Source: Vitrella brassicaformis CCMP3155
Lineage: Eukaryota; Protista; Chromerida
Reading direction: 5' to 3'
Length of the DNA: 64,000 nt
NCBI GenBank assembly: GCA_001179505.1
Contig: CDMY01001036.1
Location: forward strand, 1 to 64,000
Under the pieces are notes generated by a model. That model was given only the letters and a program-made list of their open reading frames with translations, was not told the DNA's origin and ran no database searches. The position numbers and the translations under genes are program-made. Below are positions 49,028 to 51,130 of this stretch, one piece after another; position 1 is the stretch's first letter; every line of letters starts with the position of its first letter.

Positions 49028-49786
49028 ATGGGAGGGGGGAGAGCCGCCAACGGCTCCGTCGCAGCTTGGATATCGCGGACCTCGGCATTGTCGACGACTA
49101 TGATCGATTCGCCCTTCCCGATTTCTATGGACTCCAAGGTGGTCCCCGCCTGCTGCCCGGCTGCTGTGGCCGCTGCGGCTCTCCGCCCCTCACTGTGCCC
49201 CTCCACCAATGCCGTGACGATCTTGTCGATCACCGGCGACAGATTGCGGTAGTCATAAGCGTGTGGCCCTCTTGGGATGCGAAGGCTACGGGGATACCGG
49301 ACGACAACGGACTTGAGCCGTGTCAGCCGCCGGCCCCACTCGAAGGCGTCAGCGAATGAGAGGCCGCACCAGAAGCGCCGCTCGGCCGTGTCGTAGATGT
49401 CCATGACCAGCTGGGTGATCTGGCAGCTGACGTGGCGCCACAGCCGCTGGGGCAGCGCCGCCACCAAATGAAGCGACACGAACGAGAAGACGTAGGCGAC
49501 GACAACCGGCTGAGTGCACAACACACACCACACAAAGAAGGGAGCGATGAGCATCTGTGCGTTTGCCAGTGTTTCGTTTGGTGCAGCTTACGATTTGGCT
49601 GAAGTGCTGAGCAAAGGCCTCCAAATCTATGCTGTGCGATGGCGTGGCCTGCTGCTGCTGCTGCTGCTGCTGGTGGTGGTGGTGGTGGTGCTGGCTATCT
49701 GCGTCCACCATGGTCTCCTCGTTGCCCTGCTCCTCTCCCTCTCCCTCGGCCGCCCGCCCCTGCCGCTTCTGTGCCGACTCACTCAT
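49028..49786 (-). CDS. Same orphan family, copy A (N-terminal half only)
   Basis: MSESAQKRQ...HHHHHHQQQQ...IDLEAFAQHFSQI|PVVVAYVFSFVSLHLVAALPQRLWRH...; highly similar to copy B, with similarity fading after LAALPPP. Confidence 0.65.
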
Positions 49787-50116
49787 CGGTGATTATGTTG
49801 CAAACCTGCTGCCGTGAACCTGTGTGTGTGGGCCACCCAGCGCTTTCAGCTACTCCTTCTTCTACGAATGTCAAGCTCGCAAAAAAGCTCGCAGACGAAG
49901 GGGGAGAGAAGAGAAGGAAAGAAAAGGAGCAAAGGATCTCCCCAGGACGACGACAGCATTTGGAGCCATCTCTGTTGAGAGATCCGACAGATCTGCTTGG
50001 TGGATCCCGGCATTGACGCCGGAGCTCAAATCCCGCGCGGCGTCCGGCGTGTCGCTTGACACGAGCCAAGTGCTCGTTCTTGTTGCCAACCCAACAACAG
50101 CAACCGAAGAGAGTTG

Positions 50117-51130
50117 ATGACATCTCGTCGACGCGCCTCCTCCGGCCCGTCGTCCGAGCGAGGCCTGCTGCCCCGTCCCCTTCCCTCCCTCCTGGGCCGC
50201 CCACCATCATCCCTCCAGCCACACCACCAACACCAGCAGCAGCAGGCACCGGCAGTGCTGCCTGAGGACATCCCAGTGCCGGAGGACTCTGACGATGAGA
50301 CCGGATGGATACCGGGGGCCAGCCTGGACCATGACATTGCCGACGCTGTCAAGGAGGAGATTGAAAAGGTCACGGCGGCGGACGGCGAAGGGCCCGTGTT
50401 GTCGTCGAGTGAAAGCGATGACAGCGAGGAGGAGGCGCGCACGGCCCTCTCGCGTGTGGCCGCCACTGCTGACGAGCGGCTGGATTTCTTCTCGGACAAG
50501 TTCGAGCCTCTGCTGGCGCTGCGGCACCCGTCCCTCGCCCCGCCCCTGAAGCCGCAGAAGAACCTCGACACCATCGTGCAGTGCAACCTGCTGCTGCCCT
50601 GGGAGCTCCAGGACCAGCTGGCGCCGCCATACAACCTCTCCCTGCAGCAGGCCCCCGACAGTCAGCAGAAGGACCAGCCGCAGCAGGGGAGGAAGATGGG
50701 CGATCACATGAAGCAGAAGCTCAGCCGGATCCGTGAGCGCGTCAAGGAGACCAAGGAGAGGGCGGCCTGCTGGCTGCGAGGCGAAATCGGCAGCAAGAGC
50801 CAGGGGCCGCTCGGGGCCATCGGGCAGTACGTCAGGAACCAGGAGTACGTCCGTGTGTGGGTGCGGTCCAACGCCCGCGGCAAGGCGGCGGTGAGGTCGA
50901 CGGTGACGGGCCTGCCCGTGGCCTATGACAAGCACTGGTCCCTGCTCCTGAGCAATGTGGTGGAGGTCATCTACCAGCCGGCCACTGCCGATTTGACCCG
51001 GCGTGGTGTGCGTGTGGAGGAGAGGAGGCGCAAGCTGCGGTCGCTGTTTGTGCGGGGCGACAATGTGATGCTCGTGGCGCCAGTCGATGGCATCTCGGAG
51101 GCGGCGAACCGGTTCTGGGGGTACAGATGA
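50117..51130 (+). CDS. LSM11: LSm11-like (U7 snRNP-specific) Sm-like protein, intronless
   Basis: The N-terminal motif RLDFFSDKFEPLLAL resembles the metazoan LSm11 motif (LDxxSxxFDPLLAL, recalled). Sm1: GPLG...VRVWVRS...VTGLPVAYDKHWSLLLSNVVE. Sm2: LRSLFVRGDNVMLV. Confidence 0.8.
   Translation: MTSRRRASSGPSSERGLLPRPLPSLLGRPPSSLQPHHQHQQQQAPAVLPEDIPVPEDSDDETGWIPGASLDHDIADAVKEEIEKVTAADGEGPVLSSSESDDSEEEARTALSRVAATADERLDFFSDKFEPLLALRHPSLAPPLKPQKNLDTIVQCNLLLPWELQDQLAPPYNLSLQQAPDSQQKDQPQQGRKMGDHMKQKLSRIRERVKETKERAACWLRGEIGSKSQGPLGAIGQYVRNQEYVRVWVRSNARGKAAVRSTVTGLPVAYDKHWSLLLSNVVEVIYQPATADLTRRGVRVEERRRKLRSLFVRGDNVMLVAPVDGISEAANRFWGYR

Follow-up and report, generated by a model that had tools for sequence, protein, structure and literature searches.

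The gene at positions 50117..51130 (+) of a 64,000-nucleotide stretch of the Vitrella brassicaformis CCMP3155 genome (GenBank assembly GCA_001179505.1, contig CDMY01001036.1, positions 1 to 64,000; hereafter the window) very probably encodes, to judge from its sequence, the V. brassicaformis orthologue of LSm11, an Sm protein derived from SmD2. We favor an explanation in which this protein, inherited by vertical descent within the chromerids, would also serve in the U7-type processing of histone mRNAs, and we put that explanation as a whole, identity and function together, at roughly 0.6. U7-dependent histone mRNA processing was long held to be an animal specialty, and we know of no U7 RNA that has been experimentally confirmed outside animals. 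Recent surveys push the protein parts of the pathway back towards the root of the eukaryotes, and V. brassicaformis is a free-living, culturable organism that is close kin of the apicomplexan parasites. The genome that was searched, that of strain CCMP3155 (G000 in the coordinates below), comprises 72.7 Mb in 1,064 contigs.

The gene is listed as one uninterrupted open reading frame (ORF) at 50114..51130 (+), which from its first ATG at 50117 runs for 337 codons, giving a single-exon coding sequence (CDS) for 337 amino acids plus the stop. The database protein P0001 is identical to the window protein over its full length, so that the public gene model is likewise a single-exon CDS, and it carries the stored Pfam 38.1 tags PF28412 (LSM11_N) and PF01423 (LSM). 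The initial annotation, made from the letters alone, had described three motifs in a given order behind a long N-terminal extension, and these are indeed present at residues 121-135, 245-286, and 307-322, an arrangement that is far beyond chance. The extension itself, residues 1-119 (50117..50473, +), is low in complexity, acidic, rich in Gln and His, and mostly predicted to be disordered. In the AlphaFold2 (AF2) model, the block means of the predicted local distance difference test (pLDDT) are 41-48 over residues 1-70 and 91-100 and 60-68 over residues 71-90 and 101-120, with two low-confidence helices predicted at 71-86 and 103-116. The extension is not conserved, and the ~115 poorly conserved residues that precede the motifs stay unaligned in the family alignment described below. 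The LSM11_N block follows at residues 120-161 (50474..50599, +) and contains the N motif RLDFFSDKFEPLLAL (residues 121-135, 50477-50521, +). It aligns with the start of human LSm11's N-terminal domain (NTD), the segment that binds the FLASH dimer, at human residues ~30-56. Across 32 relatives F129 and L135 of this block are invariant, S126, A134, L160, and P161 are nearly so, and residues 121-140 are modeled with block-mean pLDDT values of 91-93.

Between the N block and the Sm fold, AF2 predicts a long basic helix at residues 190-224 (50684..50788, +), with block-mean pLDDT values of 85-91 over residues 191-210. A charged helical spacer is found across the family, and by analogy this helix may correspond to the helix of human LSm11 that contacts CPSF73. 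The Sm fold occupies residues 229-322 (50801..51082, +) according to the Pfam LSM match and the AF2 model, which predicts an N-terminal helix and five strands. It comprises Sm1 at residues 245-286 (50849-50974, +), with the core YDKHWSLLLS, a short insert of 20 residues, and Sm2 at residues 307-322 (51035-51082, +), in which R313-G314-D315 is kept. Most of the fold has block-mean pLDDT values of 84-96, and the value falls to 75 at the insert between Sm1 and Sm2.

The identity of the protein was examined by sequence, profile, structure, and phylogeny. A Pfam-A search with the window protein returned only the generic LSM family, above the cut-off (E value of 3.4e-7). A phmmer search against all PDB sequences placed human LSm11 at the top with an E value of 7e-10, compared with 7e-5 for SmD2, and the human LSm11 match consisted of two stretches, one pairing the N motif with human RLDVSSDSFDPLLAL and the other covering the Sm fold separately. 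An exhaustive HMMER search of 1.84 billion representatives recovered 143 relatives, most of them aligned from residue ~115 to residue ~322 and hence over both parts. In an alignment of 32 of these 143 relatives (A2), the common layout runs from an N block (LDFFS..FDP..AL ... PLDN..C..LLP) through a charged, helical spacer to Sm1 and Sm2, which are separated by a variable insert. The profile made from A2 matched human LSm11 in a single stretch from the N block to Sm2 (E value of 1.2e-39) and matched SmD2 in the Sm part only (5e-21). A word-based protein search, in which the single protein matched only itself and the family profile gave two matches in a swamped result, was uninformative on distribution. 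The Pfam 38.1 entry for LSM11_N is named [quoted passage not shown] and the clusters in which LSM11_N and LSM are paired derive chiefly from Chlorophyta, Arthropoda, and Chordata. With the predicted structure as the query, the top Foldseek match was the LSm11 chain of the human U7 ring (9n96_D; template modeling score of 0.87, root mean square deviation of 1.8 A), with SmD2 and LSm3 close behind. The description of the protein as LSm11-like is thereby borne out, with human LSm11 being the best match by sequence, profile, and structure, and with the stored LSM11_N and LSM tags on the same protein.

The initial annotation had also proposed a comparison of LSm11 and SmD2 hidden Markov models (HMMs), and this favored the LSm11 side. 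An LSm11-type HMM that was built without Vitrella sequences scored the window protein at 144 bits (78 for the Sm part alone) and the V. brassicaformis SmD2 at 71, and an SmD2 HMM scored the V. brassicaformis SmD2 at 85 bits and the window protein at 41-44. In a maximum-likelihood tree of Sm domains, the LSm11-type and SmD2 groups were split by a branch with 100/99 support, and the window protein was sister to Cvel_16280 of Chromera velia (98/90). The tree has long branches, its SmD2 set is mostly parabasalid, and it holds no animal LSm11, so that the link to animal LSm11 comes from the PDB profile match and the Pfam LSM11_N family.

One residue of the Sm1 motif stands out. The asparagine of the Sm1 loop is kept in 31 of the 31 other aligned family members and only the Vitrella protein has a serine there, Ser275, encoded by TCC at 50939..50941 (+), a codon two changes away from Asn. 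Every other residue that is invariant in the family is kept. We take this asparagine to be a contact of the bound uridine in Sm-site RNA, and its replacement by serine may mean that the cognate Sm site has a different nucleotide or that RNA binding is relaxed.

A six-frame scan of the genome for LSM domains gave 19 matches. Fifteen other Sm genes were read from their exons as SmB, D1, D3, E, F, and G, LSm1-8, and a NAA38-like gene, and they include the five proteins that a U7-type ring shares (SmB, D3, E, F, and G). SmD2 was not among them. A canonical SmD2 of 106 amino acids was located on G000:C636 by degenerate back-translation of the SmD2 core motif. Its gene has five exons of 19 to 135 nt each, at 1911-1929, 1771-1832, 1612-1674, 1503-1544, and 1260-1394 of locus L049 (-), separated by GT-AG introns, making four introns in 107 codons. 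That the six-frame Pfam scan missed this gene entirely is a warning for claims of absence in so intron-dense a genome. LSm10 was not among the 19 six-frame LSM matches, and a search with the SmD1 exon matched only itself, but these negatives are weak, since the same scan missed SmD2. The parabasalid SmD2 P0095 had the window gene as its best six-frame match, and the idea that the window gene is the only SmD2 of the genome was rejected on the evidence of the canonical gene on C636.

Two further components that the initial annotation had suggested looking for, SLBP and a histone 3' stem-loop, were both found. Two genes, on C310 and C376, contain the SLBP RNA-binding domain (PF15247) at scores above the Pfam cut-off, and each gene is split by an intron. 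Rfam searches for the histone hairpin (Histone3, RF00032) found none in the whole genome, with 75 candidates scored, and no Histone3 match at E values of up to 10 on 14 histone loci, the hairpin being too divergent. A plain hairpin scan recovered the same element behind an H3 gene and an H2A gene. As a pattern, this hairpin matched the genome 22 times with at most 3 mismatches, 16 of these with at most 2, compared with 0 and 3 matches at most 3 mismatches away in the reversed-pattern controls. On the coding strand, copies occur behind H2A and H2B, which form a divergent pair on C531, behind H3 on C599, and behind H4 on C47, so that each of the four core histone genes is followed by the same conserved hairpin, at ~330-490 nt past the stop codon. 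The element reads U-GGUGCC-ACUG-GGCRCC-A followed by CCAYGUGAC and forms a 7-bp stem of -12 kcal/mol. The sole variation in the stem is a change of G to A, which converts a U.G pair into a U-A pair and leaves the stem paired. The hairpin keeps a G-C second pair and a U at loop position 3, both of which a 2026 preprint describes as diagnostic and as retained in all lineages (10.64898/2026.10.14.759114). Contigs with the H3 variant genes, a CenH3-like gene, the H2A.Z-like genes, or a multi-copy H2A-like family lack any copy of the hairpin.

The members of that H2A-like family (…AGLQFPVARIARYLKKGRYAKR…) contain introns and lie at loci L039-L044 (G000: C530, C497, C370 twice, and C723). They have an extra C-terminal exon rich in lysine and alanine, and no histone hairpin occurs within 1.5 kb of them. 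Histone-type hairpins were also seen away from histone genes. A ~900-nt repeat, present in at least 11 copies, terminates in such a hairpin, in the GGCACC variant, at position ~1500 of each locus. These copies were found on G000 contigs C302, C397, C421, C501, C602 (two), C391, C627 (two), C666, and C734, at loci L054-L057, L059-L061, L063-L065, and L071. The repeats and the H3 3' region have in common an upstream block, GTCGCTGAGCC...GAGTCTCGCGACC, and the repeats show a TATAAA-like box ~400 nt upstream and no convincing ORF. The repeats may be a family of non-coding genes, or else a mobile element, that makes use of the 3' signal of the histones. A further copy with the tail ACCCU (L062; G000:C405:88899-88919, +) stands after a non-histone ORF for a charged, coiled-coil-like protein, and that gene may use the same 3' signal as the histones.

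The search for a U7 RNA was conducted with both Rfam and a pattern. The Rfam model of U7 (RF00066) found none in the whole genome, with 65 of 4202 candidates scored. The first U7 pattern combined AAGTCAC, the complement of the shared post-hairpin motif, with 1-25 nt of spacer and then AATTTKT, a U7-type Sm site. Across the genome, this combination of an anti-histone downstream element and an Sm site gave two matches versus one control match, which is chance level. The better-looking of the two, at L076 1478-1540 (-) in the C499:261156-261191 region, is 63 nt long with AAGUCAC, a 22-nt spacer, AAUUUGUAG, and an 8-bp hairpin, and it has a fold z-score of -2.9. It was rejected as a chance look-alike, as it runs antisense to a coding exon that resembles glycoside hydrolase family 3. 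Within the window no histone hairpin, no small nuclear RNA (snRNA) promoter element, and no Rfam family at gathering score was found, in agreement with the earlier remark that neither a U7-like RNA nor a histone gene is seen there.

Three clusters of U2, U1, U5, and U4 genes were used to define an snRNA promoter element, TCAGCCATCACCGACTGCAGATCT, which is present at -59 to -36 of all twelve snRNA genes. Genome-wide there are 22 copies of this element, compared with 0 in the control, and 10 of them are not beside a known snRNA. The proximal promoter element (AGCCATCACCGA....AGATCT) is specific to the lineage, and its ten orphan copies are located elsewhere than at the twelve U1, U2, U4, and U5 genes. 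The promoter pattern places them on G000 at C318:64551-64573(-), C929:20148-20170(-), C176:161114-161136(+), C241:73059-73081(-), C294:82603-82625(+), C611:40058-40080(+), C687:4228-4250(-), C707:19070-19092(-), C784:4489-4511(+), and C917:1122-1144(+). Judging from the promoter pattern, the orphan sites should mark unannotated RNA polymerase II small-RNA genes, whether U7, minor-spliceosome snRNAs, or U3, and they are the obvious places to seek a U7 RNA.

A mechanism for the V. brassicaformis protein can be modeled on the animal system (PMC5636114, PMC12774660, and PMC7026596). In humans, residues 23-130 of the LSm11 NTD bind FLASH (PMC5636114), and LSm11 takes the position of SmD2 in the U7 ring (PMC7026596). 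By analogy, the Vitrella LSm11 would sit at the SmD2 position, with SmB, D3, E, F, and G and an LSm10-type partner, in a heptameric ring assembled on a U7-like RNA. The LSM11_N block would dock a dimeric, FLASH-like coiled-coil adaptor, and LSm11 and the adaptor together would bring the cleavage module of CPSF73, CPSF100, and symplekin to histone pre-mRNAs. Those pre-mRNAs would be marked by the SLBP-bound hairpin (GGUGCC-ACUG-GGCRCC, then ACCA) 330-490 nt past the H2A, H2B, H3, and H4 stops, and CPSF73 would cut just after it. We consider a U7-type histone-processing function of this kind probable on balance, by analogy with the animal protein. The initial annotation had named, as findings that would tell against it, a grouping with SmD2 or other LSm proteins, or else the absence of LSm10 and SLBP together with histone mRNAs that are all polyadenylated and have no stem-loops. 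What we found was for the most part otherwise, since the protein is LSm11-type, SmD2 is a separate gene, SLBP-domain genes are present, and a hairpin follows the four core histone genes.

Several observations weigh against the explanation that we favor. Neither Rfam, with 65 of 4202 candidates scored, nor the pattern, with matches at chance level, yielded a U7-like RNA; no LSm10 was detected, a weak negative, as the same searches missed a real SmD2; the distance from the stop codons to the hairpin is unusually long; Ser275 stands in place of an otherwise invariant Sm1 asparagine; and expression of the gene is unproven, with 44% of its sampled words present in one run that was guessed to be RNA. 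A protein that is LSm11 by descent and yet is repurposed or a relic, having kept the fold and the N block with no U7 guide RNA, would fit several of these observations. It might, for example, serve as an adaptor to the CPSF73 module or be part of another Sm ring, with histone mRNAs formed mainly by ordinary cleavage and polyadenylation. The failure to find either a U7 RNA or LSm10, an RNA-binding pocket altered by Ser275, the distance of 330-490 nt from stop codon to hairpin, and the existence of lineages that have SLBP and stem-loops but sparse U7 machinery (10.64898/2026.10.14.759114) all point in that direction. However, more than 30 distant lineages, the Chromera sister among them, show clear constraint on the N block and the Sm motifs, SLBP and a hairpin on all four core histones are kept, and the negative searches are of a low power that missed SmD2 as well, and we consider this alternative, the main rival, unlikely, though one to be taken seriously. 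At the other extreme, the chromerids may keep a complete and working U7-type cleavage system, with a guide RNA too divergent for Rfam that is made from one of the orphan promoter sites, an Sm site that co-evolved with the change of Asn to Ser, and cleavage at a hairpin 330-490 nt into the 3' untranslated regions. This fuller version is possible, and we offer it tentatively.

The two remaining alternatives concern the gene itself. A divergent SmD2 paralogue that has an N-terminal extension and serves the spliceosomal small nuclear ribonucleoproteins (snRNPs) would account for the match of P0095, a true SmD2, to the window gene as its best in the six-frame genome, for the narrow margin of the LSm11-type HMM over the Sm part alone (78 versus 71 bits for the Vitrella SmD2), and for the closeness of SmD2 and LSm3 behind LSm11 in Foldseek. 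This proposal is largely refuted by the presence of a canonical SmD2, which the SmD2 HMM prefers by 85 to 44 bits, by the 100/99 split in the tree, and by the want of an LSM11_N block in SmD2, and we give it hardly any weight. It is also very improbable that the gene is a recently acquired, retroposed, or non-functional intronless copy that is not really used. The initial annotation had pointed out an intronless gene in an intron-dense genome, and this holds, as the CDS is a single exon, SmD2 has four introns, and the histone genes have introns as well; together with the unproven expression, this is what speaks for such a copy. Against it, the 337-codon frame is intact and keeps the family-invariant residues except N275, and the gene appears to share a compact head-to-head promoter region with a neighboring ORF. 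The suggestion of retroposition or transfer fared less well, with neither a poly(A) tract nor a target-site duplication at the 3' end and with the Chromera velia homologue as sister and closest relative. There is no support for transfer, and an old retroposition of the LSm11 gene may have taken place. Vertical descent within the chromerids is the origin assumed in the explanation that we favor.

Among characterized proteins, human LSm11 (PDB 6v4x_D and 9n96_D) is the nearest likeness. It combines an LSM11_N block (RLDVSSDSFDPLLAL versus RLDFFSDKFEPLLAL in Vitrella) and a charged spacer with an Sm fold of the SmD2 kind bearing corresponding GPL, FDK/YDK, and RGD/RGE motifs, and it ranks first by sequence, profile, and structure. 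The Vitrella protein differs in having ~115 extra unconserved N-terminal residues and a serine for the Sm1 asparagine, and its Sm1-Sm2 insert is only ~20 residues long, whereas that of the full-length human chains (360-371 amino acids) is far longer. The Chromera velia protein Cvel_16280 (P0010, labeled "LSM domain-containing protein") has the same N block and Sm motifs, but it reaches 496 amino acids, its Sm1 and Sm2 are separated by a very long insert, and the Sm1 asparagine lost in Vitrella is still there. SmD2 belongs to the same Sm subfamily, with the GPL helix, an Sm1 of the FD, H, and N type, and an RGD Sm2. However, it has ~107 amino acids, no LSM11_N block, and a near-invariant FDRHCNMVLE core, and it lies on the other side of the 100/99 branch.

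The initial annotation had presented an LSm11 outside Metazoa as a novelty, and in this it had been anticipated. LSm10 and LSm11 were described in Physarum polycephalum (PpLSm11) in 2021 (PMC8600027), and an October 2026 preprint reports LSm10/LSm11 in green and red algae, land plants, stramenopiles, holozoans, and amoebozoans, with early fungi also named for LSm11 (10.64898/2026.10.14.759114). The LSM11_N family of Pfam 38.1, too, tags the Vitrella protein. The LSm11 proteins of Physarum and of the preprint resemble that of Vitrella in being non-metazoan, in occurring together with SLBP and histone stem-loops, and in having no bona fide U7 RNA identified beside them. In those lineages an LSm10 partner was found, whereas the Vitrella searches yielded none, in a scan that also missed SmD2. 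We found no literature text that names LSm11 in chromerids or other alveolates, and the Chromera and algal homologues are labeled by their sources only as "Sm/LSM domain-containing," not as LSm11. The Vitrella gene is thus a sound new LSm11, an expected member of the family that current Pfam recognizes. Vitrella has an LSm11, two SLBP-domain genes, and a hairpin common to four core histones, and its sharply defined snRNA promoter element narrows the search for U7 to ten loci, which makes the existence of a U7 guide RNA outside animals directly testable in one organism. If the chromerid system is complete and working, the alveolates, to which the malaria parasites belong, would gain their first U7 snRNP open to experiment. 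A U7-like RNA from one of the ten promoter sites would raise the interest of the gene.

The neighborhood of the gene is compact. A spacer of ~330 bp (49787..50116) separates the LSm11 start from a divergent upstream ORF, and from the ORF layout and the sequence it is presumed to hold a bidirectional promoter, common to both ORFs, and the 5' untranslated region. The divergent neighbor lies at 49349-49786 (-) and encodes six consecutive His and then ten Gln.

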